A stretch of DNA of 64,000 nt, from positions 1 through 64,000 of the IMG/VR virus record IMGVR_UViG_3300048924_000100, one strand, 5' to 3'. The notes below the pieces were generated by a model, which worked only from the letters and a program-made list of their open reading frames with translations, had not been told where the DNA came from and did no database searches. The translations under genes and the position numbers were made by a program. Position 1 is the stretch's first letter, and each line of letters starts with the position of its first letter. Of the stretch, positions 10,406 through 58,100 are shown piece after piece.

Positions 10406-10455
10406 TACTGTGAATTACATTGTTTATATCGAAACCCAGCTATGGAGATTCACCC

Positions 10456-12153
10456 ATGTACATGCAACTCTCTAACAACGGTCATACTGACGCCACTCGT
10501 CGCAATACACAAGACATCGTCGAAGACGTAATGATGGATGTCCGCGACGCCGTTGTAGCCACCATGGGTCCAAACGGCAAACTCTCTGCTATCACCGTCG
10601 GTACTTCTGTGAAGGTAACCAAAGACGGCGTTACGGTTGCGAAGAGCCTGAAGTTTGTTAACCCGTTCGAAGAAGCGGTTAACCGCATCATTACTGAACC
10701 TGCTGTCAAAACCGACGTCGAGTGCGGTGACGGCACCACTACCACCATCCTGCTGACCTCCGAGCTGTATCGCCTGTACAGCCAGTTCCCTAACTATCGC
10801 GAACGCAAGTTCATCGACATGCTGGGTAACAAGATCATTGATCAACTCAGCCGTATGTCGATCACCGTAACCAACGACAGTCCAGAGCTGTACAATCTGG
10901 CCCTGACGTCCTCTAACGGCGACGAGGCGCTTGCTACGGTCATCACCAATATCTATCACGCTGCTGGTGATAAGTACCCTGAGATCGAGCTCAAGGAAGG
11001 CCTGGGTGGCGAGGACCAGATCGTCACTACAGACGGCCTGCTGATGAACCTGATCTACAGTAACCCATCGTTCAGCAAGAACGGTAACGGTACTGCGTCG
11101 GAGTTCACCGACTTCTACCCGATCGTTATCGACGACAACATCCGTAACGTTGATCCTCAGGTACTGGGGCCTATGCTCAAGCAACTGTTGGATCGTACTG
11201 AAGACAGCGCTGGAACGTTCCTGCTGATTGCTCGTTCTTTCGATAACGCTATCAACAGCATGATCCTGCAAATCAACAACCAGCTGAAGCGTCCAGCGTT
11301 TATCTGTGCACAGACCAACTTCGGCGGTTCCGTGGGTACCTTGCTGATGCAGGATCTCTCGGTGCAGTTGAATGCAAACATGGTCAAAGTGTTGTCTGAC
11401 ATCGTGTTCGCTGATTTGAACAAGTGCCAGGATCATCTGACCATCGGTTCGACGCGTTCTGTTTTCGTTCCGTCTATTCTGCCAACCATCGAGCGCATTG
11501 CTCGTCAGGTAGAGTCGATTGAACAGGAGCTTAACAGCTACGAACGTGGTGAGCGTTTCAGCATGCGTGCTCGTTTCAACGAGAAGCGTTTGCGTGATCT
11601 GAAGGGTGAGCTGGTTACCGTGTTTGTGGGTGGCGAAACTCAGTCTGAGATCAAGGAACGTATCGACCGTTTCGAAGACGTGTCGAAAGCAGTCAAGTCG
11701 GCGCTGGTTAACGGGATCCTGCCTGGTGTGGGGAGTGCTCTGGTAACCGCTGGTATGTTTGCTATCAGCGAACTGTCTGAGGAAGATGAAAAAGACCCAG
11801 TGTTCGCTCAGATCATTGAGGTCATGGAAGAAGTGGTATTCTCCCAGTACATCTTACTGATGGGCGACATGCTGGTACCCGTGGATATTCCTGTTACGAA
11901 AAGACTGGACGCCCTCCGTCGGGTTCGCAAGCAGATTGCTGGTAACGTAATGGATATGGATCACCCTAATCCAATTCCTGCGGTCAACCTGCGTGATAAC
12001 ACCCGAGGGTCTCCGCGTGAGCTGGGTATCTTCGACACGGCGTATGCTTCGATCACTGCATTGCGTGGTGGTATGGCGACTGCTAAAACCTTGGCCAGTC
12101 TCGATAGCATCTTGATCGGGGACAAACTGGCTGCGGTAAACGTTCAGTCTTAA
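10456..12153 (+). CDS. groEL: phage GroEL-like chaperonin (Cpn60)
   Basis: TMGPNG, VTKDGVTVAK, GDGTTTT, VGGETQSEIKERIDRFED and GILPGVG motifs; GGAG RBS before ATG 10456. Confidence 0.95.
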   Translation: MYMQLSNNGHTDATRRNTQDIVEDVMMDVRDAVVATMGPNGKLSAITVGTSVKVTKDGVTVAKSLKFVNPFEEAVNRIITEPAVKTDVECGDGTTTTILLTSELYRLYSQFPNYRERKFIDMLGNKIIDQLSRMSITVTNDSPELYNLALTSSNGDEALATVITNIYHAAGDKYPEIELKEGLGGEDQIVTTDGLLMNLIYSNPSFSKNGNGTASEFTDFYPIVIDDNIRNVDPQVLGPMLKQLLDRTEDSAGTFLLIARSFDNAINSMILQINNQLKRPAFICAQTNFGGSVGTLLMQDLSVQLNANMVKVLSDIVFADLNKCQDHLTIGSTRSVFVPSILPTIERIARQVESIEQELNSYERGERFSMRARFNEKRLRDLKGELVTVFVGGETQSEIKERIDRFEDVSKAVKSALVNGILPGVGSALVTAGMFAISELSEEDEKDPVFAQIIEVMEEVVFSQYILLMGDMLVPVDIPVTKRLDALRRVRKQIAGNVMDMDHPNPIPAVNLRDNTRGSPRELGIFDTAYASITALRGGMATAKTLASLDSILIGDKLAAVNVQS

Positions 12154-14731: not shown

Positions 14732-16231
14732 ATGTCATTACTAAATGCAAACGAAGCCACCTACATCAAACGGGCTCGTATGACATCTGCTTTCTTTCGC
14801 AAGATCGGGCAACCCGATGAGATGATAAACGTTATCGGCAGTTATGGGGATGCCGAGATCGCTGATACCTTTGCGCCTAAAGACGGGGCACCGGGTGAAG
14901 CGTACGTTGTTGGTAACGTGCTTTACATCTGGGATGCCGAACAGGGGTTCTGGATCTGTGGTGGTGAGATCGGGGATAAGTGGGAGCGTGTTCATCCTCA
15001 CAACATCCTCGAAGCCAATCGTCCTGGTCTCAAAGCTGACCTGCTCCATGAAGCTGAAATGAAGGCGTGGGTGCCAGCTGCTGACAGGACCGGTGTAGTC
15101 TGGTTCATCGATCATGTCTACACATGGGACGAGATGTATACGTGCTACAGGAAGGTCGGACCTATGGTAGACCTCAAGGGTAGCACTACTGACCCAGCCA
15201 AGGTAACCGACGACTTCTTGCACGAGCTCTACATGTCAGACGTACGGGCTAACTACCAGGGTACGTTTGAAGCGTGGAAGCTACAGAACCACGACATCAG
15301 TGGGTTGTTGAAAAAGGCTACTGGTACCGAGGGTCTTCCTTCTGCAATAGCACCAGTGCGCGAAACTGCTCTGACAAACGAGGAGATCCTGGCAAAGCAT
15401 TTCTCATTAGACGTCGGGGCTGGTTACGGCGGAACCTACGGGGAATGGTGCTCTCAGAATGGCGACCTCAATGCCGTTCTGCGTAGTGCGTCTGGTTACA
15501 CTGCACAGGACCCCGATCACCTGGAATACGTACGCCGTCTGGAAGAGCAACGTATGCGGATCCATCAACGGGACATATTGGCAGACGCCAAGGAACACCC
15601 ATCTCTGGATGACGTGTCTTCGTTGCTGGAAGGTGCTCTACAGAAGCTTGAGGGTGAAGAAAGTGATGCTGCTTTCAAAGCACTCGATGCCTTGAAGAAG
15701 GTAAAGGTCGATCTTCGTCGTAAGCGTCGTAACACCTGGCTGCGTTGGTTGCTCTTCTGGGCTATCGTGGGTGGTGCGGTTTACGGTCTGTATAAGTGGT
15801 TGCCCACCCAAGTGGTAAGCGGGCATTACACTGTGCCGAAGACTTGCTCCGTTCCTTTCGGCAACGGTTTGATTCAGGGTATGCGTTACTACAACTACTC
15901 TTACAAGTCGTTGTTCGGTGTTCACTTTACTCTGGAAAGCACTGTACGGGAAGAGACCGACGTTACCAAGAACGGTCAGGAGTTCACTATCTTTGGCTTG
16001 TCTCCTCGCAATGAGGCTGCAACCGAAGAAGAGATGGCACTGGCAGACAAGGCATTGAAGGCTGCCGAAGTGGAAGTGGAAGGTGCGCCTAAACCACCTA
16101 AAGGCAAATGGTGGCGTATAAACGTGTGGTCTAGTGACAAAGGTACTCAGTGGATGAAGCCAGCCGAGTTGTATCTGTTCGCCTCTGAGAAGTACACAAC
16201 CATGGTCGCTTATAAGGACTTCTGTAAATGA
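14732..16231 (+). CDS. single-pass membrane protein with tail-fibre-like N-terminal repeats
   Basis: RRKRR followed by TM WLRWLLFWAIVGGAVYGLYKWL; N-terminal motifs match repeats in the 23696-27943 fibre. Confidence 0.75.
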   Translation: MSLLNANEATYIKRARMTSAFFRKIGQPDEMINVIGSYGDAEIADTFAPKDGAPGEAYVVGNVLYIWDAEQGFWICGGEIGDKWERVHPHNILEANRPGLKADLLHEAEMKAWVPAADRTGVVWFIDHVYTWDEMYTCYRKVGPMVDLKGSTTDPAKVTDDFLHELYMSDVRANYQGTFEAWKLQNHDISGLLKKATGTEGLPSAIAPVRETALTNEEILAKHFSLDVGAGYGGTYGEWCSQNGDLNAVLRSASGYTAQDPDHLEYVRRLEEQRMRIHQRDILADAKEHPSLDDVSSLLEGALQKLEGEESDAAFKALDALKKVKVDLRRKRRNTWLRWLLFWAIVGGAVYGLYKWLPTQVVSGHYTVPKTCSVPFGNGLIQGMRYYNYSYKSLFGVHFTLESTVREETDVTKNGQEFTIFGLSPRNEAATEEEMALADKALKAAEVEVEGAPKPPKGKWWRINVWSSDKGTQWMKPAELYLFASEKYTTMVAYKDFCK

Positions 16232-16857
16232 AAAGTATCAAACATGTAAACGTGGGAACCGTGGGTCACATTGACCACGGTCGTGTGTTGCAGTACAGAG
16301 GACCGCGAGGGTACAAGCCAAATATGGCTGACATCTCGTGGAGTACACCGCACATAAAGGTTTACCACAATCCGTTCACACCGGAGTTCATCAACTGCTT
16401 CAACGGGTTGCTGTATGTAGCTGGTCGTGTTGTTCATGACATGGACATCTACGCAGAGGTAGAGACCCCTTCCGGGAGGGGTGCTCTTATCGACGGCCTT
16501 ACCATTCTCGACTACCCGGGTATCATCCACGACGAACCTCCACAGTTCATGAGGGGGAGCAAAGGTGGTATTCACGGCATCGGTAACCTCACCAGTAAGT
16601 CGTCCTTGCTATTGGATGAATTTATCGCGCAATCCGAGATCGGGTACCTCTCGAACCAAACAAAGTTAATTCGTCGAGAGGGTAACAAACAGCTACTCGT
16701 GGCTGACCGTAAGTCGATCATTCCTTCGCGGCGTGCAATCCAGTGGGCAATTGAAATGCGTAACTGGAAGGACAAGGATCTGTTCAAGCTGTTGGGTATG
16801 AAGCAATTCACTCCTGAGCAGTTGGCTGCACTGAGATGGGAACGTAAGGATGGCTAA
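16228..16857 (+). CDS. hypothetical protein with EF-Tu-like N-terminal peptide
   Basis: KHVNVGTVGHIDHGR; ATGA overlap with the upstream gene. Confidence 0.75.
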   Translation: MKSIKHVNVGTVGHIDHGRVLQYRGPRGYKPNMADISWSTPHIKVYHNPFTPEFINCFNGLLYVAGRVVHDMDIYAEVETPSGRGALIDGLTILDYPGIIHDEPPQFMRGSKGGIHGIGNLTSKSSLLLDEFIAQSEIGYLSNQTKLIRREGNKQLLVADRKSIIPSRRAIQWAIEMRNWKDKDLFKLLGMKQFTPEQLAALRWERKDG

Positions 16858-18469: not shown

Positions 18470-19057
18470 ATGATAACTAAAGGACTCAGCTTTACCGACA
18501 ACTTCCCATTGGCTGATGTTGGAGAGGCGCAATTCAGAGTTAACCGCAACACAGGTGAAATCGTTACAGCCAATACACACTGGCGGTTGCGACAAGAGAC
18601 CGTGCTTATTCGCCACGGTCTTCGTGAACCTATCCGGTTCTACGGTGTAACACAAACTGCTCACGGTAATCTGATTGCCATGAGTGATGGGCATCAAACG
18701 CGTTATTACTGGATCAATTCAACTGGTCGTCGTGATACGTATTTGATACAGGGCTCTTCGTTTACATTTGAAGAAGCCTGGGAACACTTGTTCGAAGCAC
18801 TGGTCTTGGATGGTCGTGCTACATCCATTGCCTTGTACAGTCGCATCAGTTTCCTCTTCATTTGGTATTTCAGTCAGATCAAGCCTAAACCGGCATACCT
18901 GGCTACAGAAGGTTCATGGAGAGGTGTTAAGAAAGAAGTCTTGTTCGAATGGCTACCTGACATCGGACAAAGAGCAGTACAGGTAACTATCGCTGGTTAT
19001 AAACCCGTTGCAGTACCCCTGGCGGATCACCCGCTTGTAGGCTTGCTGCGCAAATAA
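18470..19057 (+). CDS. hypothetical protein
   Basis: 195-aa operonic ORF. Confidence 0.7.
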   Translation: MITKGLSFTDNFPLADVGEAQFRVNRNTGEIVTANTHWRLRQETVLIRHGLREPIRFYGVTQTAHGNLIAMSDGHQTRYYWINSTGRRDTYLIQGSSFTFEEAWEHLFEALVLDGRATSIALYSRISFLFIWYFSQIKPKPAYLATEGSWRGVKKEVLFEWLPDIGQRAVQVTIAGYKPVAVPLADHPLVGLLRK

Positions 19058-19074: not shown

Positions 19075-19539
19075 ATGACAAACGCACAACGTAAACCAGT
19101 ATTGAGCATCACCAACATCAACGGCAACGGTCAACAACTTCAGGTGACCTCTTACGAGCACCAGACCACTTACATTGTGTCCGGCGGTGATCTCAAGCTG
19201 TATGGCGGTACCATGTACCTGATTCAAAAGCCTTCTCACAGTTACGAGGAGGCTGTGGAGATGTTGTTCAAGCACCTCGTAATGGACGATCGTGAACACG
19301 CGATCAACTACTACAACCTGGTAAGTAGCTTCTTCATCGGGCACTTCGGCAATGCAGACCGCGACAATTTCAAAGCAACACTGACCAGCCGTTGGCACAA
19401 ACTGTTCCTGCACGTAGAACTGGAACGTCGTCCTGGTCTGGATGCATCGCTGATGTTCTTCCACGTCCACGAGAAAGAGATGTTGGTTTCTCTGGAGTCT
19501 CACCCGATCGTTTACATCTTGGCCAATGAAAAGCAATAA
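19075..19539 (+). CDS. hypothetical protein
   Basis: 154-aa operonic ORF. Confidence 0.75.
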   Translation: MTNAQRKPVLSITNINGNGQQLQVTSYEHQTTYIVSGGDLKLYGGTMYLIQKPSHSYEEAVEMLFKHLVMDDREHAINYYNLVSSFFIGHFGNADRDNFKATLTSRWHKLFLHVELERRPGLDASLMFFHVHEKEMLVSLESHPIVYILANEKQ

Positions 19540-23695: not shown

Positions 23696-26600
23696 TTAAG
23701 GAACCACAGCACCAGGCGAACCGACCCACTCGACACCATCCCAGGTGAAGGTTAATTGTGTACGACTACCCGTCAGCGGAGGTGGACTACCACCGTGCCA
23801 GGCCAGAACAGTAGCGCCAGTTGCAGCGAAGGTGATCACACCAGCAGCACCGGTGATCTTGAACACCACCACCAACCCACGGGCACTAGCTCCTTTCGGA
23901 CCATCGGCCAGCGTAATGGTTTTGGCCGTTGCAGCGGAGTTATCCACTCTAACGAACTCAGCAGTAGCAGGGTCAACCGTTGCAGTTGCACTGATGTTGC
24001 TGATTGCCAAGTCATAACGATCGAACGATACCCAGGCAAGACCTTTACGAAGGTACTGCTTACCGTCGTTTGGTGCGTCGGTAAGCCGTGCGTTGATCTG
24101 ACCTTGCGCTTTACCGAACGCCGCGAGGATCGTGTCGGCTGCTGCAATAGCAGCGTTAGACCCAACGGCATACCCAGTCAGTGTATTCGTCCGAACCCGA
24201 GCTGCTGTAAAGTAAAGGTTAGTGGATCCTTCCACAACAGCGTCAGTAGTACCCGGAGAAGCCGTCAGTGCAACGTACACGCTACCGGTCCAGCGGAACT
24301 GACCGTTGGTTGCGAGGGAGATGTAAATCTTCCCTGTTTCACCAACTCCAGGGAAAGCCGCTTGGTTAGCAAACTCCAGCACGTCGTCGACATAACTCGG
24401 CAACTGACCAGCAGGAATCTTACCCGCTACCAGTGTCGCAACGGTGACGCCGAGATCCGCGGTAGCCACACCACCAAGGCTAGCCAGAGTAGGAGCAGCG
24501 TAGACGCTCCACGTATGGTCACCCTTACGCAGGTAGAGGTTGGAGTCCACCGGGGTATCAGCAAACCCAGGCACGAAGGCGTTGATCTGCGCCTGCACCT
24601 TACCGAACGCTGTGATCACCGTGTCAGTGCCCAAAACAGCACTGCTAGCGGCAAGGCTCAACCCGGTTAGAGGTGACGAACGAACACGAGCAGCCGAGAA
24701 GTAGAGATTGGTAGTACCCTCTACAACTGCATCCGATGTACCAGGCGAAGCTACCAGTGCGACGTAAACAGTACCCGACCAGCGATACTGAGTGTTGGTG
24801 TCCATGGCGATATAGATCTTGCCAGTTTCACCAGTGCCAGGGAACGCCGCTTGGTTAGCGAATTCCAAGACATCGTCTACGTAGCTAGGAAGCTGACCTG
24901 CTGGAACAACCCCACCAACAAGCGTTGCAACCGTAACGCCCAATGCCGAAGTCGGCACACCGCCCAGAGAGGCCAGCGTAGGAGCGTTATACGTTGCCCA
25001 GGAACCAATAGGCTGGCCATTGGCGCGCACACGCATGTACGGAGCACCGTCAGCCGGAGGTTCAGCGATCTGGGTCGGGAATACCAACTCAATCCACTCA
25101 CCCTCGTTGGTGGAAGAACCGGACTTCAGGGAACGGACGTACAGCTTGCCGTTAACCATGTTCGGTGCTTCGTCAACTGGCAGGACGATCCAGTCATTAC
25201 CCAGACGTACCGCTTTACCGAAGGACAGCAGAGGCGAGTTAACATCACCCGCTACCAGCCGACCCCAATACACCCAACCATCCACAGTCGAGTTGTAGTA
25301 GACCTTGAAGGTATCCGATACAGCCCAGTCACCAGGGTTACCAGTGAAGCCCAACGGCGGCGCATCAACGCCAGCAGGCAGCGTGATCCAGGACGAACCC
25401 TTATCACCCTTGTCGCCTTTCTTGCCGATACCGATTGGACCTGGGACACCTTGCACACCCTGAGGACCGCGAACCAGACCGATGTCGATCCACTTGCCGC
25501 CTTCAGCAGTAGTCCAGATAGCCAGGTTGTTACCAACCAGATAGCCATCACCCAGGTTACCCGTCGGATGAGCGGTAGCCAGGTCAGCCAGAGTGTTGTA
25601 TGCACCCAAGATCTGGATGGACGTACCTGGATCACCTTTCTCGCCGTCTTTACCAGTAGGACCCTCAGGACCGATGATATCGAATGGACCTTCCCACAGA
25701 CCGTCGACCATTACGTACAACAGCTTACTGCTTTCGATGAAGTAACCGTCACCGTCTACAGCGCCCTGATCAGGACGAGGCAGGTACTGAACAGCTGGAG
25801 TCGTACCACGTAGGTTTACACCGTGACCTTGAGCACCACGGTCGCCCTTAGCACCAACTGGACCGCCGTCATACCAGATGCCGCCATGCGCCAACTGAAT
25901 ATGGTTATTCAAGTCGATGTAGGCTTTACCGGAGTTGCTTGCGGCATCAGGGATGGTTTGATCACCAGGGGTCAGAACCTTGATGATGTCGATGGATGTA
26001 CCGTTGGCACCATCAGCACCCGGGAGACCGTCATTACCCTTGAACGAACCCAGCACAATCCAGTTACCGCCAACAAAGGCGTACAGGGTGTTGGTATCAC
26101 GAGCCGAGTAGACGTCCTGTTCAGCAGGCGTGGCAGGCAGTGCGGTGTAAGTAGCTACCGAGCCTTTAACGATGATGTTGGTACCGTTAGTACCGTTAGC
26201 CCCTTGCAGCGAAGCCAGGAACTCGTTGGCTTCACCGGTAAAGCCCGCGTCCAACCAAACTTGGTAAGCCGACTTGCCTTCGAAGCGACCGATGTCATGC
26301 CATGTGCCGTCATTGTAGACCCACAGGTGACCTGTATCAGCTGTCACGTAACCGTCTTGCTCAACTACACCTTGGATGTTCCCCAGGGAGTTTTGGTTGG
26401 TGACAGTACCCTTGACGTTCAGGTTCTGACCACGGTCGCCTTTAGGACCAGGAACAACCGACTTCAGTGATTCCAACCAGGCTTGCAGATCACCACCGAA
26501 ACCATCCGCAACAGCCAGCTCATAAGCCGACAGACCACCAGCGGAGCCGAGGTCAACGTACTGTGCTTGAGTGGTTACCCAAACGTACAGGTGACTACCA

Positions 26601-27943
26601 ACGTACCAGGCTTCAGTAGCAGTACCCGGAGTAGGCAGCGCACCAACAGTGGCCTTGGAACCCATAACTTCGAATGGAGCACGGGCAGGGCCTTCGTCAC
26701 CCTGAGGACCGGGTTCAACCGATACCAGCGACGCAACGAACTGTGCTTCAGTACCCGCGTTGCCCAGAGACAACCACGATTGATAAGCGGACTTACCAAC
26801 CAGGCCAGCCAGGAACTCGCTCTGAGAACCCGTGTGACCAGCATCCAGCCACACTTGATACGAAGACTTACCTTCCGGACCTTCCAGACCGATAGACACC
26901 CACACCGGATCAGGTATAGGGCTGCCTTCAGGCAGCGTGGTGCCGTTGAAGCCAGGAACCAGCAACCAGATGTCAAGACGCCAGATATAAGCATCACCTA
27001 CAGCCGAAGCATTAACGTCAGGCAGTGCGCGGTTGTCAGGCCAGGTACCCAGCAGGGTAATGCCACGAGGACCCAACAGCGAACCAGACCCGATCCATTC
27101 AGTCAGGTTCCATACCCACAACTGACCTTCACAGAAGTAGCCGGAGCCGTCTGGCAGGTTAGTCGTGTCGATGGCGTCGAGTTCAGTCAGGTTTTCCAGG
27201 GTACCCAGAATCTTAACCGTACTGGCTTCGCCTGGTGCACCTTTCAGGTAAGCGAGGAAGGCTGCCTGGTTACCGGTATGACCTTCGTCAAGCCAGACGT
27301 CATAGGCAGAGTCGCCTTTCATGGCACCGACGAATTCTGCTTCAGTGCCACTGTGGCCTTGATCCAGCCAAGACTGGTAAGCACTCTTGCCAACCAGTTT
27401 ACCCAGCCACTCAGCTTCAGTACCGGTTTCACCGAGATCTACAGCGGACTGGTATGCCGATTTACCCGCATCACCTTTAAGGCCGATGTTGACCCAACCA
27501 TCTGGCTGAGGGATCAACAACCACACGTCACCTTTCCAAGTGTACGCATCGCCTACTTTCTTAGAAGCAGGAGCTGGTAGCGGAGTTGCATCAGGCCACT
27601 TGCCCAGTACATTGATGCCGCGTGGACCCAGCAAGGAGCCGGAACCAATCCACTCGGCGAGGTTCCAAACCCAGAGTTGGCCTTCGGTGAAATACGCCGA
27701 ACCAACGTCGAGGTTGGTAGTATCGAGTGCATCCAGCTCGGCTTTGGTGTTCAGGTTACCGAGGACGTTAACGCCCCCAGCGATCAGTGCTTCGATCTGA
27801 GCCTTCAGGTAAGCGGTACGCGCCGCCAGCGCCACAGCTTGGAGGTTGGAGTTAGCGGATTCATCGCCGCCTACAACGTCTGTCCCCCGTGCCATAAGTG
27901 GGACGCTGGGAAACGCATCCGGTTTTTCAATGATATCAGTCAT
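23696..27943 (-). CDS. long tail fibre protein with collagen-like G-X-Y segments
   Basis: N-terminal DVVGG..ANSNLQA..LAARTAYLK fibre-attachment motif; GKSAYQxW repeats; G-X-Y triplets; duplicated PAGQLPSYVDDVLEF module. Confidence 0.9.
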   Translation of the reverse strand: MTDIIEKPDAFPSVPLMARGTDVVGGDESANSNLQAVALAARTAYLKAQIEALIAGGVNVLGNLNTKAELDALDTTNLDVGSAYFTEGQLWVWNLAEWIGSGSLLGPRGINVLGKWPDATPLPAPASKKVGDAYTWKGDVWLLIPQPDGWVNIGLKGDAGKSAYQSAVDLGETGTEAEWLGKLVGKSAYQSWLDQGHSGTEAEFVGAMKGDSAYDVWLDEGHTGNQAAFLAYLKGAPGEASTVKILGTLENLTELDAIDTTNLPDGSGYFCEGQLWVWNLTEWIGSGSLLGPRGITLLGTWPDNRALPDVNASAVGDAYIWRLDIWLLVPGFNGTTLPEGSPIPDPVWVSIGLEGPEGKSSYQVWLDAGHTGSQSEFLAGLVGKSAYQSWLSLGNAGTEAQFVASLVSVEPGPQGDEGPARAPFEVMGSKATVGALPTPGTATEAWYVGSHLYVWVTTQAQYVDLGSAGGLSAYELAVADGFGGDLQAWLESLKSVVPGPKGDRGQNLNVKGTVTNQNSLGNIQGVVEQDGYVTADTGHLWVYNDGTWHDIGRFEGKSAYQVWLDAGFTGEANEFLASLQGANGTNGTNIIVKGSVATYTALPATPAEQDVYSARDTNTLYAFVGGNWIVLGSFKGNDGLPGADGANGTSIDIIKVLTPGDQTIPDAASNSGKAYIDLNNHIQLAHGGIWYDGGPVGAKGDRGAQGHGVNLRGTTPAVQYLPRPDQGAVDGDGYFIESSKLLYVMVDGLWEGPFDIIGPEGPTGKDGEKGDPGTSIQILGAYNTLADLATAHPTGNLGDGYLVGNNLAIWTTAEGGKWIDIGLVRGPQGVQGVPGPIGIGKKGDKGDKGSSWITLPAGVDAPPLGFTGNPGDWAVSDTFKVYYNSTVDGWVYWGRLVAGDVNSPLLSFGKAVRLGNDWIVLPVDEAPNMVNGKLYVRSLKSGSSTNEGEWIELVFPTQIAEPPADGAPYMRVRANGQPIGSWATYNAPTLASLGGVPTSALGVTVATLVGGVVPAGQLPSYVDDVLEFANQAAFPGTGETGKIYIAMDTNTQYRWSGTVYVALVASPGTSDAVVEGTTNLYFSAARVRSSPLTGLSLAASSAVLGTDTVITAFGKVQAQINAFVPGFADTPVDSNLYLRKGDHTWSVYAAPTLASLGGVATADLGVTVATLVAGKIPAGQLPSYVDDVLEFANQAAFPGVGETGKIYISLATNGQFRWTGSVYVALTASPGTTDAVVEGSTNLYFTAARVRTNTLTGYAVGSNAAIAAADTILAAFGKAQGQINARLTDAPNDGKQYLRKGLAWVSFDRYDLAISNISATATVDPATAEFVRVDNSAATAKTITLADGPKGASARGLVVVFKITGAAGVITFAATGATVLAWHGGSPPPLTGSRTQLTFTWDGVEWVGSPGAVVP

Positions 27944-33633: not shown

Positions 33634-36477
33634 TTAGAAAAGGGTTAGTGCGCTGTTGGTCATCTTGAGCGGACGGCCATTCAATTCTTCGCTGATATCC
33701 AGGGTCTCTTCACCAGTTACGTTAGCAAACGCCACGTGACCTTCCATGCGCCCCATCAAAGCATCCACCTGTTCTTTACTCCAGGCCAAGATGTCCAAGC
33801 TGCGAGTGGTGATGTTGAGTTTATCCCCAGTGTCCATGTCCAGCATCCGGAAGAAGCATTGAGCTGCATCTTGTCCGGTACGCCAGATCCTGCCTTTCAC
33901 TTGCCGCAACTCGTGTTCCCTGAATGGGGAATCCAACCCGATGATCTGGTTAGCCATCAACAACGGATAACCTTCCTTCAGACTGTTGTACACGGCCACC
34001 AAAGGATTGGTACGCTGGTCCTCACCAAACTTCTTGATGGTGGGTTCCCGGTCGCTGCTGTTCTCGCCATACACCGATACAGGCTTGTAACCCTGAGCGG
34101 TCAAGTAATCAACCGAGAGTTTCAAGGCTTCAACGTAAGAGGTAAAGATAACAGTCTTCTTCTCTACGTCGTCAATGTACTTAGGCAACTCAGCGTGAGC
34201 GATTAGATCCTTAATGGCATTGATACGTGCACGACCCAAAACGTTGCCCAGGGCTTCACCACGGATCTTCAGAGCCAGGTACTTAACCGCTGATTTCACG
34301 TTACGGAACTCAGCCAGCTCAGGACCCCGGATACCACGTTCGATATCCTCCTCTACAGACTTGCAGAAGGCACTGTCAGCTGCATCCGTGAAGTTGTTGT
34401 ACCCTTGGGTGCGGAACCGATTAACGACCGCCTTGTAGCGCTGTAGCTCGGCCAACTCTTTTGGGTGCTTCAGGACCGTGTGCTCATAGCGTTGAACCAC
34501 ATCGTTATAGAACACGATGAATTCTGCCATGTGTGCATTGTAGAAACGAACTCGCTCCACAATGTAGGTCTGCATCTCCAAACGAATAGCGTCCAAGGTG
34601 TACTTCTCCCCGTTAGGGATTTTAACCTTGATGATCTCGAACGGAGGAGGATCACCCATACCAGCCAGTTCAGGGATAGAGAACTTGCCACGACCGATAC
34701 GATTCGCCAGCAACGCGATAAGCGCAGGACGGTTACGACCATAGCTCGCCATGAAGAACTCTCTAGCGGGCTTGTCGAAGTGTTTATCGATAAGGCAGGT
34801 GATAGGGTAGATCTCACTCCCAAGTGCCTTCAGCGGCGTCCCAGACATCGGTAGCGCATCCTGGAACAACCCGTCATCCGCCAACTCAACCAATCGACGC
34901 GTTTGCTTAGACTTCATGTCGTTAAAGTTGTGAGACTCATCGACGATCAGACTAAACTGTTGCTTGTTGCGTTTCATGGCTTCATTAAACCATTTGCGCA
35001 AGTGGTCGTAGTTGTTACCCTGGAGGAACTCGTAGTGCACGATGTAGTAGTCGTAGTCATCGGTCAACAAACGACCGGATGTAGACGTCCATACGCGTGG
35101 CATCTCATGGAAGTGCTTGCGCATGTTACCGAGCCAGACTTCTTCCACGATGTTCAGAGGGCAGAGGATGATGCACTTGTTATCACTGACCAACGTTGAC
35201 CACATTAACGAGGTCACGGTGTTGTGTGTCACGATCCAGTTATCAACAATGTACAAACAGTCTTCACTGTCAATACTGATGCAGGCGGTTTCGATCTGCG
35301 GTTGTTGTTCGATAGCCACCAACTTGAGTTTGAGGTTCTCGTATTGATGTAGATCAACAATCTCACCTAACGGAACGCCTACCAGGCTGTCCACTAACCC
35401 GACCATGTCACGGTGTTTAAAGGTCACCTTGAACGAAGTGCCGAAGAGTTCCTGAGAAGCCACCCCTCCAAGACTCCACATGAGCTTCTGGAAGTTGGTA
35501 GCACCGTAGACGTTGTCCACAACCACCGATACGCCAGCCTCTGACAGATGACACCCTGACTGCTCGATCATGAGCTTAGCGATCTGGTGTCTTTCCCCGT
35601 AGGAGAGTTCTGTCACTGGGTCAGCCATATGTATACCAGCAGTCAGCAGACCGGTAGCAATCGTGAGCAAATCCAGATGAGAAGATGAGGTGTCTTCATT
35701 CACGTTACCCACCAGTGGGATGTGGTAACTGAACTGGTCGAAGTGATTGATGATGTCCCTGGTTGTAGTGACGTAGGTCTGGGCGACGATGTTACCTTGT
35801 TCGTCAACACCGGCCTCGGCCACTTCCCACAGATGTAGCGGGTGTGATTCAGCAGTACGGCCATCCTCAAAGGTAAACCGGAAACTCTCGGTAACACCTT
35901 GGGGGAAGTAACCCGTGATGTTGGCAACGTTCCCCTTGGGTCCTATCACCTGGTCACCTATCTTAAGGTCACCAAGGCGCTTCCAGCCACCCGGTACTTT
36001 AACCTGGGTGTTCAGGGGCATTGCTTTACCGCTACCTACTGCCGCATCGAGCAACAATCCTTTAAGGTGGTAGCTGGGCTTAATGATGGGGTACTGTTCC
36101 AGGAACTCACGTTGTTTGGGGAACGGTGCTACCTTGAACCGCTCCAGTCGTTTGAAATCAAACTGTTTGCCGATGGGGTTAACAGTGTCCTTAATCCAGG
36201 TTTCTGTTTCAAGCAGGTGCTTTAATTCAGCCAGCTCTCTACGACGACTACGGAGGTTACGAACCTTCAGCAACTCTCCCAGAACCAGATGCAGTTCTAC
36301 CAAGAAGAAGTTATGGACCTTGATGGTATCCCAGGTTTCCCTGCGGATCTGCCATTTGGTAATAAGGGAGCTGCTGTAGAACTTCTCAATGTCTCGTGCC
36401 AGTGCGCCGTATGAAACCCCTGTGATGTGAACGTATACCCCAGTTTGCTTTACAGCAACTGAAAATAAGTTGAACAT
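33634..36477 (-). CDS. SNF2/SF2 helicase containing an intein
   Basis: Walker A AAVGSGK|T split by the intein; DESH; motif III SGTP; QVKGRIWRTGQ motif VI. Confidence 0.9.
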   Translation of the reverse strand: MFNLFSVAVKQTGVYVHITGVSYGALARDIEKFYSSSLITKWQIRRETWDTIKVHNFFLVELHLVLGELLKVRNLRSRRRELAELKHLLETETWIKDTVNPIGKQFDFKRLERFKVAPFPKQREFLEQYPIIKPSYHLKGLLLDAAVGSGKAMPLNTQVKVPGGWKRLGDLKIGDQVIGPKGNVANITGYFPQGVTESFRFTFEDGRTAESHPLHLWEVAEAGVDEQGNIVAQTYVTTTRDIINHFDQFSYHIPLVGNVNEDTSSSHLDLLTIATGLLTAGIHMADPVTELSYGERHQIAKLMIEQSGCHLSEAGVSVVVDNVYGATNFQKLMWSLGGVASQELFGTSFKVTFKHRDMVGLVDSLVGVPLGEIVDLHQYENLKLKLVAIEQQPQIETACISIDSEDCLYIVDNWIVTHNTVTSLMWSTLVSDNKCIILCPLNIVEEVWLGNMRKHFHEMPRVWTSTSGRLLTDDYDYYIVHYEFLQGNNYDHLRKWFNEAMKRNKQQFSLIVDESHNFNDMKSKQTRRLVELADDGLFQDALPMSGTPLKALGSEIYPITCLIDKHFDKPAREFFMASYGRNRPALIALLANRIGRGKFSIPELAGMGDPPPFEIIKVKIPNGEKYTLDAIRLEMQTYIVERVRFYNAHMAEFIVFYNDVVQRYEHTVLKHPKELAELQRYKAVVNRFRTQGYNNFTDAADSAFCKSVEEDIERGIRGPELAEFRNVKSAVKYLALKIRGEALGNVLGRARINAIKDLIAHAELPKYIDDVEKKTVIFTSYVEALKLSVDYLTAQGYKPVSVYGENSSDREPTIKKFGEDQRTNPLVAVYNSLKEGYPLLMANQIIGLDSPFREHELRQVKGRIWRTGQDAAQCFFRMLDMDTGDKLNITTRSLDILAWSKEQVDALMGRMEGHVAFANVTGEETLDISEELNGRPLKMTNSALTLF
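35221..36024 (-). mobile_element. class 3 intein (268 aa, Ala1, ends HN|T) with degenerate LAGLIDADG remnant
   Basis: Block A AMPLNTQV...GDLKIGDQV; block B HLW; block F TACISID; block G VTHN followed by Thr. Confidence 0.9.
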
Positions 36478-52134: not shown

Positions 52135-55100
52135 TCAGATGTTTACGCTGTTAGGCGCAGGCTCTGAGTTCTTAGACATCTTCTCCAAGAAGCCATGGAT
52201 ACCAGCCAGCAATGCGTTGGTGTCTTGTTGCTTACTGACACCTTCCGCTGTAGTGGTGGTAAGTTTCTCCATCAAGCCGTTCGGATCAGCAGGTTTCTCC
52301 TCAGCGGAGAGTTGCTGACGCGGTACCGGCTTGTACCCTTCGGGCGCGAGCTGACCATTCGGCTGCGGAACAGCACCAGGACCAGCAACAGGACCAGCAG
52401 GGTTAGCAGTTGAACCACCTCGTTGACCAGGCAATGGCAGGGAGGTATAAGGCCCAGGAATTGCTCCTGCACCTGCTCCCGGCGCAACACCACCCTCTCC
52501 ACCAGCAGGGTCGTTGTTTCGCATTGCCGGAGTTGGCATGGTCGAAGTATCTGGCGGAGTCGATGGCATTTGACCTGGATCGTACTGCTGATCTTTAGCC
52601 GTTACCATTCCACCCGCTGTTGTGTCTTGACCTGCTGACTGACCTGCACCTGAAGCTTGTGCAAACTTGTCTGCCGCTTCCTGGGACTTGAAGCCTACGT
52701 GCACATGACCACCAGTAGCACCAGCCGAAGCCTTAGCGTACTCGTTAATCAACAGGAAGTCAGACGGACCCAAGTTAGCGGTCTGCAGAATCCCTGCTAC
52801 AATCCCCATGGCCTGACTAGCGCCACTTGGACCGTTGGTCAAGGTAAAGTCCAACGCCAGTCCTTTAGCGTGCTTGGACTGAGGTTTTGCACGTTGATGG
52901 TACGCATCATTCAGCGCCGAGAAGTAACGGAAGTTAGGAACCTGGCTCTGGATCAGTTGAGCAAGACGAGTAATACCAGGGTGAGCGTTACCGCCCGCAA
53001 TGGCCTCTCCTGACTTAAGACGCAAGCCACTCGAGTTAATACCTGTACCGCCGCCTACCAGAGAACCACCTTCACCACCGCCATTCGTTGGAGCACCGCT
53101 GTAGTCACCACCGCCGCCGCCAGGAGCCATCAGGCTTGGAGGAGTCCCGTAGGAACCACCACCGCTTGCAGCACCCTGTGCGTTACGAGAGCCACCACCA
53201 GGAGCCACACCAATCGCCGGAGTATTACCCCCACCAATGGTTGGGCCGCCGCCGTACATCCCACCAGCACCTTGAGTAGGTGCAGCGTTAGTACCTTGGG
53301 CACTCGCATCATCCGCCTTCAGCTGACCACCTTGTAATTGCTTCAGGTAGTCAGTGTAGAGCTGGAAGCGCTTAGGCATACCCGGCAATTCATTACCACC
53401 ATTCAAGCCAGTGGCAGAACGACCGAAGTTACCGTCTTGGGTGATGCTTTGCAACAGCTTGCTGTTTTTGTAGAAGTTAACCGCAATAGCCGCCATGACG
53501 TTTGGATCGTTAGACGCCAGCTCCGGATTATTCACCAGGTCAATACCCAGCTGTTGTCCGATGCGTGCGTACTGTGCCCGACCCGTCAGTTGTACCAAGC
53601 CACGACCACGATACTTCCACCCATCCCCTGGTGCGATGTTACCCAGTGACTGACCTTTACCACCACCGTAAACAGTGTTAGCAATAGCCACAGGACCTGC
53701 CGCAATAAGCGCACGCGCCTGTGCCAGACTAGTGACCTCACGGAAGGTCTTCATCAGGTTTTCAGGGGAGGTGTAGTTCATGTTTTCTACGGTACGACCA
53801 AAACCACCGGTCTCGTAGTTGGTGAGCGCCAGCATCTCAGCGATTGCACGTGGGTCGGTAAACCCTTGTTTCATCATCTCGCGCATGATCAGCTGTTCTG
53901 CCAACGTCTTCGGTACTTTAACCCCGTTATCCTTCCCGTCGGCTGATTGCACCCCACTGAGGTCCAGGTGACTGGTATCGCTGTCGCCTGTCAGAGGAGC
54001 ATAACCGTAGGAGTTTCCAGGAGTCTGATACACACCGCCCAGGCCGTAGGTGTTGCCCGTGCCAGAACCAGTGCTAGTCCCCGTACCAAACTGTCCACCC
54101 AGACCAATGTCGCGACTATTTCTAGCCTGGCTTGCGTCTTGGACGTTTGCCTGTTTCGACGTAAAGTCACCGCCCGTCTTGTGAGGGGAGATTTCAGTGG
54201 CCCAAGCTTGAGCGTTGGTCTTGCCCGCTTCTTTCTCTGGATCCTTCAACTTAGCCGTTGTACTGGCTTCACCAAGAGTTGTCAGCATCCGATCAACCCG
54301 ATCTGGCTTATCTGGTGATACCGCGTCTTTAAACGGTGCAGCCCTGACGACCCAAATCGGAACCAGCAACGACTTACTGACTTCTACCTTGGTCTCTACC
54401 AGCCCCTTGGCGATTTCATATCGAGCTGTTACCGACAGAGTTCTCCACACCACCCCAGGGTTACCGCGGCGGTAGTTCTGCATCAGGTTGAAGTAGTTGA
54501 TGAGGACTGGCATGAAACGGTCTTTAAACCACTTGCACCAGTTATCTGCATCACCAGAGTCGACACGGAACGAGTCCTTGAACAGACCGAAGATGTCACC
54601 CACCTGACCTTTAAACTGAGCACCCCCTTCAGCAACAACCATCAGGGATTCGCAGTAGCGTTCCAGTTTCAGAACCGCTTCCACACGCCAGGTCAAGTCT
54701 TGATCGTTACCGTAGCACGCCAAACGAATGCCAGTGAGCATATCCACAGGACGATTGTCTGGCAGCAGGTCTTTGATGAACACCGCAGAGGCTACCGGGG
54801 AGACTTTGTACGAGTTGTTCAGCTGAGCCAACTGGCTGTTCACTTCGTTCAACCGGTTCTCGGCTCTCTGTACCGACTGCATCTTGTCAGAGCTGTCAAA
54901 GAAACCGCGAGGGGCATTAACCTGCGCTTGCAGGGTCGCCTGTTCCTTCTTCAGAGAGTCAACGCTTTGAGGCATTTGAACTGCGGCATTATCATCAACC
55001 CCATCGGTCTTGCGATCGATGTACTTCTTCAGTTCTTCCAGCAAGTTGTTGCAACGGACGACTGTAGCCTTCTCACCCAGAATCGGGGTATCCGGATCGA

Positions 55101-58100
55101 TCTTAGCCACAATCGAATACGGGAACGGCATTACCGACCCAAGGGTCTGGTGTACCTGTTTGGCTACTTTGTATACGTCCTGGGTCTTGGCGTCGTCGTA
55201 GTCCTTTAACGACTTCATCTTGACCACATCGAGGCAGGCCATGTAAGTCAGGTACACCGGCTTGAAGCGACCGTTGAACCAGCTGAACACGCTACCCAAT
55301 TGTTGCTTGCTGTTGCGGTCAGTGATGAACGACTGGAGGATCTCTTGAAGAGGAGCATCCTTGGACAACGACGCACGACCGTTACCGATCACAACGAAGT
55401 CCTTCAGTTTATCCTCGATCTGCAAGATCTTCTCGGCAAGGTCGCTATCGGAATCAGACACACCGTACTGAGTCATCCGGAGTTCGAACTGTTTCCCCGA
55501 ACCACGAGTCACATAACGATAGATCCCGTAACCGACCGCACCAACTGCCAGGGCACCCAAGACATATGGGTTAAACAGCAGAGGAGCAATCGCACCCCAA
55601 GCACCTGCCAGCAGCGGAGCAGCAGCAGCGGTCATCGCGCCCACACCAATGTCAATACCGACCATGGACGCAGCACCGGCTGCCAACTGGTAAGCACCGA
55701 CTACGTTAGCTGCTGTCTCAACCGTGTCACCCACTTTCTCTAGCGCACCGCCTTCGTCGATAAACCCTGTGTCAACCAGGGCATCAACACCCATGCCTAC
55801 GGCCATGCCAGCGCCGAGCTTGAGACCGCCCTTCAGCATGCGACCCTTCGGAGCTTTACGACCCGCCAGCTGCTTAGCACGCTCACCCTTGGTGCGTTTC
55901 TTCCCACGCATGTGATCCAGGGCATCAGTACCTGCACCTGTAACACTGCCATGGCGCATAAAGCTGATCATGCCTTTCGCAATCGCCCCAATCCCTGTGG
56001 CAATAAACGGCAAGGTCTTCATACCGACCTTGGCAAAGCTACCCAACATCTTGAAGCTGTTCAACCAGGAGCCAGTGAAGAACTTGGTCAAGCCGAAGAT
56101 ACCGCCAGCGATAGCGCCGAGACCGTCTTTCAACAGACCGAAGATACCCTGACCTTTCTCTTTGGACTTCTTATCGCCCCCACCAAAGAACCCCATGCCC
56201 TGAGACATCTTGATCAGAGCATCCTGAGCATCCTCAGACTTCTTCTCCTTAGCCTTTTCCAACTTGTCGGCACGGGAGTTCAGACGATTATTCTCATTAG
56301 GTTGTTCACCCAGGTGTTCTCGCAGACGTTGGTTGATCCCTTCCTTGAGGTCACCCATGAACCCGCCCACTTTAGGTGTGCCGTCTTCCGCTTCACGACG
56401 TTCCAATTCCTCTGGACTCACTAAGCCCTGTTGAGCAGCAGAGGTCTTGTAAGCCGAGCTTTTAAGCTTGACCTTCAACTTCGGAGGCTTAACATCCGTG
56501 ATAGGCATGTTAACGTGTTCTTCGGATTCAGGTGTGTACGGCGAAGAAGGCATCTCCTCAGCGTAGTTCCAGTGTCTCATCAACAAGTGGTAGATACGGT
56601 CGACCGCGTTAACGATCGGGCTGTAGTCGGCCTTGAGGGCCTTCATGGTGGCATCCTTAGCCTTAACCATGCCCGGGATTGCTTTAGCCTTCGCCTTGTT
56701 GAACAGGTCCAGGGTCAGCGCACCGAACTTCTTGCCCGCATCACCCAACTTGTTGATGCTCATGCCCATCGAGGTTTTCAGACCACGGTCGTAGTCCTCT
56801 TGGGTAACGATGATCTCGCCGTCCTTGTCAAACACTGGACCGTCGATCTCATGCCAACCTGTCAGCTCAACAGCTTCACCACCCTCACCACGTTTCCAGT
56901 ACTCGCCCTTACCAAACCGTTTGCCCACCAAGACCGGAGAAGATTCACCCTCTCTGTAAACGTCCATCTGGTGAAAGCGATTAACGATACGGTCTTTCAA
57001 GCCAGCAGCACGACCGAATGGATCGACCCACTTAAAGGCTTTAATGGCGAAGTCACGGATCTTGTTCAGACCACTGAGCAGGACTTCCTTGTTCTCTTTG
57101 GTGAAGAGTTTAGCCGCAAGACGCCGTGCACCAATAATGGTGTCAGTGGACATGTCCTTAACGCTACCGCTGATCTGCTTCCACGACGTGATGAGGAATC
57201 CTTTCGTCGCATCGTAGTAGTTGCGGTTGGCCAACTTGTTCGCTTCCAGAATCGGAACATCCGAACCTTCTTCGTACAAGTCTTCCGTGTCCAGCGCTTC
57301 ACGGGCCTTAGTCATGCTGTGGAACTTGCTGTAGGCCAGTGCTACCGCAGCGCCACCACCCAGCAATGCAGCCGCTTTAGGGTCGTGGAATGCATAGGTC
57401 GCCAAACCACCCAGAAGACCACCCAGTACCAGCGGTTGGTTATCCAGCAGCTTATCCACGCCTTTGTTGAACATGCCTTTCAGGTTGGTAGATTTCAGAC
57501 GGTCAATGATCGACCGCTTGCCGGCTGCCACGTCACGTTCTGTTTCGGAAGAACCGCTAATCCCACCACCACCTTTACCGCCAGGCTGGTTGTTGAGGAT
57601 TCGGGTCAGGAGGTCATTACGCTCACCACCCATCTCCACCAGACGCTTAACCTGTTCGTTGAGGGTGTCCATACCGGCATTCAACGGAGTCAGATCCAGC
57701 AGTTGCCCTAACGGGTGACCAGGCCCGAAACTAGCAATGCTGTTCTTCAAATCACCCATACTTGCCAGGGATTCAGTCAGCTTGTCCATTCCTTGAACTT
57801 TAATACCGTCTGCGTGCTCCTGATCGGGGATTACAGACGTTCTACCACCAAACTGCGGCACGTTGTAAGGCATGCCACCAAAGCTGCCTGAGCGCGTCGG
57901 TAGAGGGGCACGATCGGGGATAGGTTCACGAGTCTTCCGGCTAGGGTCAGCAATGAACTTCGCCAGGTGATCCCAGAGCATCTCCATGTTGATGTCATCA
58001 CGGCCATACTCATCCGTGGTCACCAGACCGGCTTCCTTCAGCGCATCGTAACTACCGGTGCCTTTCAGGATATCCAGTTGGTTGGTAATGTCAGGAACAA

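Follow-up and report, generated by a model that had tools for sequence, protein, structure and literature searches.

A conserved EF-Tu-like peptide in a large-phage protein and its recurrence in sequence-unrelated phage proteins

In bacterial elongation factor Tu (EF-Tu), residues 12–17 form a central buried strand, and Lit cuts the same protein at G59/I60. Asp21 (D21) faces outward and, on the ribosome, lies in the sarcin-ricin loop pocket of the 23S rRNA (PMC9825190). TreTu, the only toxin known to act on this loop, ADP-ribosylates D21, for which it requires the GTP form of EF-Tu, helix D and switch I, and it does not modify a D21E variant (PMC9825190). The neighbouring residues G18, H19 and H22 are anchored to helix C inside EF-Tu, and EF-Ts alters the P-loop indirectly, by breaking that anchor (PMC4286738). 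The type IV Thoeris caspase, which is promiscuous, cuts EF-Tu at R45/R59, and Avs7 binds domains II/III. Here we describe a phage gene that carries a peptide resembling the strand and P-loop of EF-Tu. It lies in the 64,000-nucleotide stretch of DNA that we analysed (the window; positions 1 to 64,000 of IMG/VR virus record IMGVR_UViG_3300048924_000100), and it encodes a protein of 209 amino acids whose N-terminus is MKSIKHVNVGTVGHIDHGR; we call the EF-Tu-like part of this N-terminus the cassette. Our literature search on EF-Tu fragments in phage proteins found no paper, and, to our knowledge, host-derived mimicry motifs are well known in eukaryotic viruses and rarely documented in phages.

The translation of 16228–16857 opens with MKSIKHVNVGTVGHIDHGRVLQ, and both the start and the translation given in an earlier note on this DNA agree with the window sequence and the list of open reading frames (ORFs). 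When compared with E. coli EF-Tu (the TufA reference translated from NC_000913.3), residues 6–19 pair with EF-Tu 12–25 at 11 of 14 identical and 14 of 14 positive positions (BLASTP, pairwise E 6e-6); the earlier note had counted 11 identities over 13 positions, and that count is correct (HVNVGTVGHIDHG against HVNVGTIGHVDHG). When a profile of the protein's family was run against the whole PDB sequence set, each of the about 57 best matches proved to be EF-Tu (E 5e-4 to 0.03) and was confined to profile positions 3–20(35). In NCBIfam, four EF-Tu models are the only ones to match, over residues 3–19 and at 15–16 bits against cut-offs of 449–522. An hhalign comparison with a 22-sequence EF-Tu alignment pairs columns 1–19 of the family with EF-Tu 7–25 (probability 95.9%, E 5.9e-9), and in this profile–profile comparison no EF-Tu homology is found beyond column 19. 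The claim that the match ends at the P-loop is thus upheld by both BLASTP and the profile comparison. By these alignments, residues 1–19 are shown to be homologous to bacterial EF-Tu 7–25 and the rest of the protein is not, and the cassette derives from, or cannot be told from, that EF-Tu segment. As judged by sequence comparison, the similarity exceeds chance, because the peptide is invariant across the 19 sequences of the family alignment and recurs in many unrelated phage ORFs, both of which are described below.

The shared piece is diagnostic and also sharply limited. The NVGT...GH.D signature is specifically that of bacterial EF-Tu, and the phage protein shares HVNVGTxGHxDHG[KR]; however, it matches over only 19 residues, has 209 amino acids rather than 394, and lacks switch I/II, a conserved DxxG, NKxD and domains II/III. 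The cassette corresponds to strand β1 and a degenerate P-loop, in which Lys is replaced by Arg and the next Thr by Val: the Walker A pattern GxxxxGK[ST] is broken (G13-HIDH-G18-R19-V20), with R19 invariant in the family and residue 20 either Val or Met, in place of EF-Tu Lys24 and Thr25. The Pfam model GTP_EFTU (PF00009) responds to 7 of the 19 members with a best E of 0.12 and does not reach its cut-off of 26.5 bits, and there is no whole-domain translational GTPase match by PF00009 or TIGR00485. The earlier note had reported neither DxxG nor NKxD. A DYPG does exist at D95-Y-P-G98, although only in the window protein and one homolog, and the 19-sequence alignment contains no NKxD, so that part of the claim stands. 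The view that the protein lacks GTPase character stands too, as both Walker residues, Lys and Thr, have been replaced and no G3 or G4 motif is conserved. Going by these motifs, the window protein is neither a GTPase nor a member of the EF-Tu family. We also considered GRVV, DYPG and NPFxPE...GGRV as vestiges of G2, of G3 and of the beginning of domain II in EF-Tu, and rejected them, as only columns 1–19 match EF-Tu and DYPG is not conserved.

The cassette is under strong selection at the amino-acid level. The family comprises 14 close and 4 distant homologs, all on metagenomic phage contigs (the longest 105–232 kb), which together with the window protein give an alignment of 19 sequences, 25–64% identical to the window protein. 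Seven of its 17 invariant columns are N8, V9, G10, T11, G13, H14 and D16. The DNA of 12 homologs was fetched for a codon analysis of 13 homologous genes, in which residues 8–19 are fixed or nearly fixed and are each encoded by 2–4 synonymous codons; for V9, T11 and G13 all four synonymous codons are present. Because the amino acids are fixed while the synonymous codons vary, the codon table shows selection on the peptide itself rather than on an RNA or DNA element or on the 4 nt shared with the gene before it. By the same comparison, the cassette is shown to be translated and to be the most conserved block of the family, under its strongest purifying selection. The homologs keep the peptide, whose absence from them the earlier note had named as evidence against its own reading, and their synonymous sites are saturated. 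The peptide need not be at the extreme N-terminus, because some homologs carry it behind an extension of 16–75 residues. The homologs' codons include GTA, GGG and ACG, which tuf and other strongly expressed genes seldom use. Gene conversion with host tuf was considered and rejected, as the homologs differ from one another at synonymous sites and several of their codons are atypical of tuf.

A degenerate DNA pattern for NVGT[IV]GH[IV]D was scanned over IMG/VR and matched at least 98 places, of which 80 were fetched. Full tuf genes account for 31 of these 80. The ORFs at the fetched places that are not full tuf, together with the window protein and four isolated-phage proteins, make a set of 54, which with the motif masked falls into 33 clusters among the matches listed (BLAST clustering at E 1e-3), a few of them tuf genes cut by contig ends. 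By this clustering, a cassette of the form V-NVGT[IV]GH[IVM]D-[H/W/Y/F]-G-[K/R] is shown to be present in about 30 sequence-unrelated phage ORF families. With its 37 bits of information, the scanned pattern would be estimated to match IMG/VR by chance 1–2 times, against the at least 98 matches found. As a control, the EF-Tu G3 motif HVDCPGHAD was scanned completely and gave 28 matches, 28 of 28 in genuine tuf genes. Because the control is confined to tuf genes, it is, on these scans, specifically this segment of EF-Tu that is dispersed among phage ORFs, and not EF-Tu fragments in general.

Within its carriers the cassette may be N-terminal, in the middle or at the extreme C-terminus; it forms the last residues of the ORFs at L081 and L054, the former ending ...VNVGTIGHIDHGR. 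More than half of the carriers among the matches listed are on contigs longer than 100 kb. When 32 unrelated representatives were compared at the positions left free by the search, these too remained EF-Tu-like, with V at −1 in 21 of 32, H (21) or W/Y/F (9) at +1 in 30 of 32, G at +2 in 25 of 32 and K/R at +3 in 17 of 32. The flanks of the cassette are rich in basic residues and poor in acidic ones (K+R 16.5%, D+E 3.9%, compared with 13.3% and 11.5% for the whole ORFs). In all three families with alignments (window, Machinavirus and PaBG) the cassette is an invariant island. It therefore has the properties of a short linear mimicry motif, being short, found in unrelated proteins (33 masked clusters), independent of position and an island of conservation. 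It may also be accessible, with a predicted local distance difference test (pLDDT) score below 50 in both AlphaFold2 models, which were built from shallow alignments, and an indel-rich flank in PaBG. The carriers are diverse and include a terminase, a protein with a SEC-C motif and one with DUF7220, although the terminase case, L105, may be a prophage/tuf junction. We also observed a family of 72–77-residue ORFs on IMG/VR contigs of 24–48 kb (L032, L037, L067, L088 and L061/L071), which retains EF-Tu 1–40 in the form KEKFERTKPxVNVGTIGHVDHGK... followed by a conserved tail, SYPxERFNKRAVYSRGK; one of these ORFs may start further upstream, giving 115 residues.

The cassette is found in isolated phages as well. 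A tblastn search with the first 32 residues of the window protein finds small ORFs in Machinavirus and in phages PaBG, Shewanella 1/4, Vibrio henriette, Va2, Pseudomonas Jeremy, Dolphis and Cygsa01 (Table 1). The carriers from isolated phages, and those of about 25 IMG/VR families, resemble the window protein in having an identical cassette of 9–13 residues, basic flanks and small ORFs of accessory type, but with the motif masked they bear no sequence relation to it, and the cassette sits at a different position; some keep GK[ST] and helix α1, and some are fused to terminase, SEC-C or DUF7220. Among the carriers are the 109-residue Machinavirus proteins of Erwinia and Salmonella phages (phrog_12626; Erwinia phage ChrisDB gp215, Salmonella phage pSal-SNUABM-04 gp195), annotated as 'putative elongation factor Tu' or 'GTPase', to which residues 1–19 of the window protein lead by hmmscan (profile positions 30–48 of 109, E 3.8e-4). 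The same model matches in 14 of 14 control cellular genomes, presumably at EF-Tu/EF-1A genes. These proteins, from large phages of enterobacteria, likewise carry the cassette with the change of Lys to Arg, and their NVGTIG is invariant, while GH may be GQ or GA and D may be E. In contrast to the window protein, their cassette is internal (residues 33–48) and followed by an α1-like segment, with NCBIfam EF-Tu models matching residues 26–61, and the remainder is not recognisably related. An hhalign comparison of the window family with one Machinavirus member extends over 78 columns at a probability of 96.7%, with the cassette dominating the score. An AlphaFold2 model of the Machinavirus family has a pLDDT of 51, and below 50 in the cassette; the idea that its C-terminus corresponds to EF-Tu β4-α3-β5 was dropped, as this poor model shows no such fold. 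The gene neighbourhood in Machinavirus, with a GNAT acetyltransferase and a macrodomain, also differs from that in the window, and we did not carry the macrodomain link over, as no macrodomain was found in the window's genome.

In the family of Pseudomonas phage PaBG, a linker rich in indels precedes HPNVGTVGHID and a variable stretch follows it, but this block itself is invariant, and one member that has neither the second P-loop Gly nor the Lys retains it. The Vibrio phage Va2 protein adds to the cassette a switch-I stretch, EEKERGIT, whose equivalent in EF-Tu contains the Lit and caspase cleavage sites; this protein ends in a Lys/Arg-rich tail.

On the sequence evidence, the feature is real and unusual, and we rate it as a case of viral mimicry or of host-fragment exaptation of an EF-Tu peptide. 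The comparisons above show a cassette that is no longer a working Walker A motif and that recurs independently of protein context, from which we infer that it acts by itself, most simply by binding something. Because it is the most strictly kept part of the family and is present in about 30 unrelated phage proteins, it probably does its own job within its carriers. This is a real gene of a phage of about 214 kb. The reading that we prefer, at a probability of about 45%, is that its cassette is an exapted, portable strand–loop of EF-Tu serving as an autonomous binding or mimicry module. In such a protein, the cassette would present the EF-Tu-specific side chains N, T, H and D to whatever normally meets that segment of EF-Tu, and the remainder of each carrier would supply a different activity or address, which in the window protein would be the strand block and the helical C-terminal region. 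Because the flanks are acid-poor and rich in Lys/Arg, and EF-Tu D21 lies in the sarcin-ricin loop pocket, we would guess that the ligand is negatively charged and made of RNA or phosphate, with the ribosomal GTPase centre as one candidate. Our second choice of partner would be an enzyme directed at the EF-Tu P-loop. The pLDDT below 50 of the cassette in both modelled families would fit, weakly, with folding upon a partner.

Several points weigh against a portable binding module. Folded EF-Tu does not display the buried strand 12–17, so what is mimicked would have to be the loop (H, D), or else EF-Tu in a nascent or non-native form. The low AlphaFold2 confidence may simply reflect shallow alignments of 14–19 sequences. 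The Jeremy, L028, L051 and L090 carriers keep helix α1 and GK[ST], and such carriers may be either tuf fragments of recent origin or true mini P-loop units. Some matches on short contigs may be prophage/host junctions and not phage genes, and the BLAST clusters may split distant relatives, and a few of these clusters are genuine tuf pieces.

What makes the module worth pursuing is that a piece of 9–13 residues from the most abundant bacterial protein is strictly selected and spread over about 30 unrelated phage ORF families. If it binds the ribosome or a factor acting on EF-Tu, it would open a way to study the dealings of large phages with the translation or defence of their hosts, and it would double as a sequence tag for finding such proteins. 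A bolder form of the idea, which we consider rather unlikely, is that a portable 'EF-Tu tag' docks many unrelated phage proteins, mostly those of jumbo phages, at the sarcin-ricin loop or GTPase centre, or intercepts enzymes that attack the P-loop. Such a tag would be a general and so far undescribed means by which phages direct proteins to the translation machinery or protect that machinery, and the window protein would be a member with a helical effector domain. In either case, the labels 'elongation factor Tu' and 'GTPase' on small phage ORFs are misleading and are better read as 'EF-Tu-like peptide only'.

The main rival to a binding module is a degenerate mini G-domain or minimal P-loop unit, that is, a reduced EF-Tu-derived fold, possibly oligomeric, that binds nucleotide, polyphosphate or nucleic acid without hydrolysis; we regard it as unlikely. 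The order of strand and loop and the glycine spacing G13-x4-G18 are kept and are followed by Arg, but the window protein and most carriers no longer have the Walker Lys and Thr, and the PaBG-family member mentioned above still has HPNVGTVGHID although it lacks the second Gly and the Lys. AlphaFold2 places a short helix at residues 17–24 directly after the loop, at low confidence, and the Machinavirus proteins keep their α1-like segment within the NCBIfam EF-Tu match at 26–61; against this, no α/β fold appears in the AlphaFold2 models, Foldseek finds no match and profile–profile comparison finds no further EF-Tu homology. Several carriers retain GK[ST] and α1, whereas L081 and L054 end at the cassette and leave no room for α1. 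The basic, acid-poor flanks, with Lys/Arg-rich tails in many carriers, would suit a phosphate-binding unit. The Tawfik laboratory is said to have designed short β-(P-loop)-α polypeptides as ancestral P-loop models, which likewise combine a strand, a Gly-rich loop and basic segments with binding of phosphate or nucleic acid in the absence of a full NTPase fold; they reportedly depend, however, on an intact GxxxxGK[ST] and on α1, while most phage cassettes lack the K/[ST] and some have no room for α1. The earlier note had instead proposed that the peptide could be a decoy or competitor for EF-Tu-binding host factors, such as EF-Ts or EF-Tu-targeting toxins; an enzyme that modifies the P-loop, for example a TreTu-like ADP-ribosyltransferase acting on Asp21, would be such a toxin. 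The general part of this proposal, an independent function of the peptide, has gained support from the roughly 30 unrelated ORF families and the undispersed control motif, and the named partners have not. A toxin that modifies exactly D21 exists (PMC9825190), and both the TreTu target and the sarcin-ricin pocket concern residues invariant in the window family's cassette (H14 = H19, D16 = D21). However, these interactions were described for folded, GTP-bound EF-Tu, and the phage protein lacks the helix D and switch I that TreTu contacts; several Machinavirus members, moreover, have E for D and GQ or GA for GH, and TreTu leaves D21E unmodified. EF-Ts remodels the P-loop indirectly, through the helix C anchor. 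The Va2 carrier does keep the switch-I stretch, and the Machinavirus carrier gene is only three genes away from a macrodomain gene, but the genome of the window has no macrodomain. In view of published structural work on EF-Tu, a peptide by itself is unlikely to be a decoy for EF-Ts or TreTu. Because EF-Ts, Lit, the type IV Thoeris caspase and Avs7 contact EF-Tu elsewhere, simple decoys for them are improbable as well; the last three were set aside as linked systems, as all act outside residues 12–23. Taken as a whole, we find the decoy proposal quite improbable.

Two further explanations would leave the cassette without any function, and we give very little credence to either. One is that it is a neutral relic of a captured tuf 5' end, or a product of chance. 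The henriette ORF (59 residues), the 72–77-residue family (EF-Tu 1–40) and L105 (EF-Tu 6–43) do look like fresh tuf fragments, yet in each of three independent families no block is more conserved than the cassette, its amino acids are invariant over saturated synonymous sites, and homologs at 25–60% identity are not very recent copies; the number of matches also far exceeds the 1–2 estimated for a 37-bit pattern, and the control motif is not dispersed. The other is that translation starts only at Met33 (MADISW), so that no peptide is produced. The database does hold the window's own protein (P0001, 85% coverage) as 177 amino acids starting at Met33, and that ATG is preceded, at about 12 nt, by a GAGG. 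However, the 32 codons before Met33 are conserved as amino acids with free synonymous change, gene callers choose MKSIKHV in other homologs or a start further upstream (L007, L009), and in some homologs the cassette is internal, behind 16–75 extra residues. Because those 32 codons are under amino-acid selection, the ATG at 16228 is the real start and Met33 is not, and the 177-residue database call should read 209. The identical ATGA overlap is called in L001, L002, L004, L005, L006 and L008, and it likely couples translation of the 209-residue protein to that of the 499-residue protein encoded upstream. The 45 nt upstream of the start, which include a Shine-Dalgarno-like AAGGA, are nearly identical across homologs, although their conservation alone is no proof of a Shine-Dalgarno site because they also code for the conserved C-terminus of the upstream protein.

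Table 1. Coordinates and sizes of the features discussed; positions with an L-number refer to that fetched locus and all others to the window.
Feature	Position	Strand	Size or residues	Basis or detail
Gene for the 209-residue cassette protein	16228..16857, stop included	+	209 aa	ORF list
ATGA start/stop overlap with upstream gene	16228..16231	+	4 nt	sequence; ATG 16228-16230, TGA 16229-16231
AAGGA, Shine-Dalgarno-like	16214..16218	+	9 nt 5' of ATG	sequence
EF-Tu-like cassette (HVNVGTVGHIDHGR), equivalent to EF-Tu 12-25	16243..16284	+	residues 6-19	BLASTP, hhalign, PDB profile search, NCBIfam
Invariant core NVGTVGHID	16249..16275	+	residues 8-16	family alignment, codon table
Second family motif R-[VM]-L-Q-Y-T-G-x-R-x-Y	16282..16314	+	residues 19-29	alignments
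Internal ATG, Met33 (MADISW)	16324..16326	+	177-aa product	database gene caller's start
Conserved central block (PF.PE.I....GL.YV.GRV.HD..IY)	16372..16452	+	residues 49-75	alignment
Variable indel-rich middle with non-conserved DYPG	16465..16698	+	residues ~80-157	alignment
C-terminal helical region	16699..16854	+	residues ~158-209	alignment, AlphaFold2
Upstream coupled gene	14732..16231	+	499 aa	ORF list
Phage GroEL-like chaperonin	10420..12153	+		Pfam Cpn60_TCP1, E 6e-24
Machinavirus cassette gene beside GNAT ('ribosomal-protein-alanine acetyltransferase') gene, three genes from macrodomain gene	L011:3366-5589, L012:3362-5898			
Pseudomonas phage PaBG gp294			267 aa	cassette at residues 186-199
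Vibrio phage Va2 'elongation factor Tu'	L015:1480-2067		195 aa	cassette GHVDHGRTT and switch-I stretch EEKERGIT
Pseudomonas phages Jeremy and Dolphis, cassette ORF			92 aa	
Pseudomonas phage Cygsa01 'tuf'			148 aa	
Shewanella phage 1/4 S14_184			123 aa	
Vibrio phage henriette VPDG_00052			59 aa	
Cassette with SEC-C zinc motif	L095:6241-6462	-	74 aa	
Cassette at N-terminus of terminase large subunit	L105:3546-5219	-	558 aa	EF-Tu 6-43
Cassette with DUF7220	L028:539-1285	+	249 aa	

Outside the cassette, the 209-residue protein has no match in Pfam, PHROGs, NCBIfam or PADLOC, and the whole gene and protein have none among INPHARED phages by megablast or tblastn. An AlphaFold2 model built from the 19 sequences has a mean pLDDT of 51 (below 50 for residues 1–33), and Foldseek finds no match for it in the PDB. 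In the central block P52, E53, G60, V64, G66 and R67 are invariant, and it is modelled as three short strands (55–58, 61–64 and 67–71) at a pLDDT of 57–67; residues 79–128 fall below 50. The C-terminal region has the invariant residues D160, R161, P166 and I171, and helices are predicted at 143–164, 168–178, 182–188 and 196–205 with a pLDDT of 60–79. There is a weak hint of a helix-turn-helix in this region, as Pfam HTH_37 responds to 3 of the 19 members at an E of 0.09–0.12, below its cut-off; the ESM Atlas gave only noise-level structural matches, with template modelling (TM) scores of at most 0.37. Whereas the RxLQYTGRxxY motif comes after the cassette in the window protein, distant members have it in front (P0019, P0021, P0022; L022–L025). 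N-terminal extensions of 35–75 residues together with the swapped motif order were observed in L009:1376-2131, the cassette ORFs of L022/L023, and P0019, P0021 and P0022; the swap possibly arose via partial duplication.

The 499-residue protein encoded upstream has one predicted membrane helix at about residues 336–356. Its N-terminal half is hypervariable in the alignment, with large indels between relatives, and its last ~210 residues are nearly invariant; Pfam, PHROG and NCBIfam searches return no match. We considered this neighbour as a partner of the cassette and rejected it, as the positive-inside rule would put its conserved C-terminal domain across the membrane. The gene order of GroEL, several small genes, the membrane-protein gene and the cassette gene is kept in relatives. 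The GroEL-like protein of the window shares 42% identity with its counterpart in Pseudomonas phage EL and 40% with the one in Erwinia phage RisingSun. Because of these identities, we place the phage as a distant relative of both, near the EL-like and RisingSun-like jumbo phages. Its genome, from a root metagenome, has 214,198 bp at 51% G+C, and no tRNA genes were found in it; capture of the peptide together with tRNA genes was therefore dismissed. The sequencing runs that contain the region are all of DNA metagenomes.

Elsewhere in the window, we observed a 947-residue ORF with SNF2-related and helicase C-terminal domains (33634-36477, minus strand) and two very long ORFs on the same strand, one of 2660 residues (52135-60117) and one of 1415 residues with no Pfam match (23696-27943). 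On the plus strand, two adjacent ORFs of 195 and 154 residues (18470-19057 and 19075-19539) look by eye like paralogs (...YLIQGSSFTFEEAWEHLFEAL... versus ...YLIQKPSHSYEEAVEMLFKHL...), and relatives have a similar gene pair (195 and ~150 residues) at the corresponding position.

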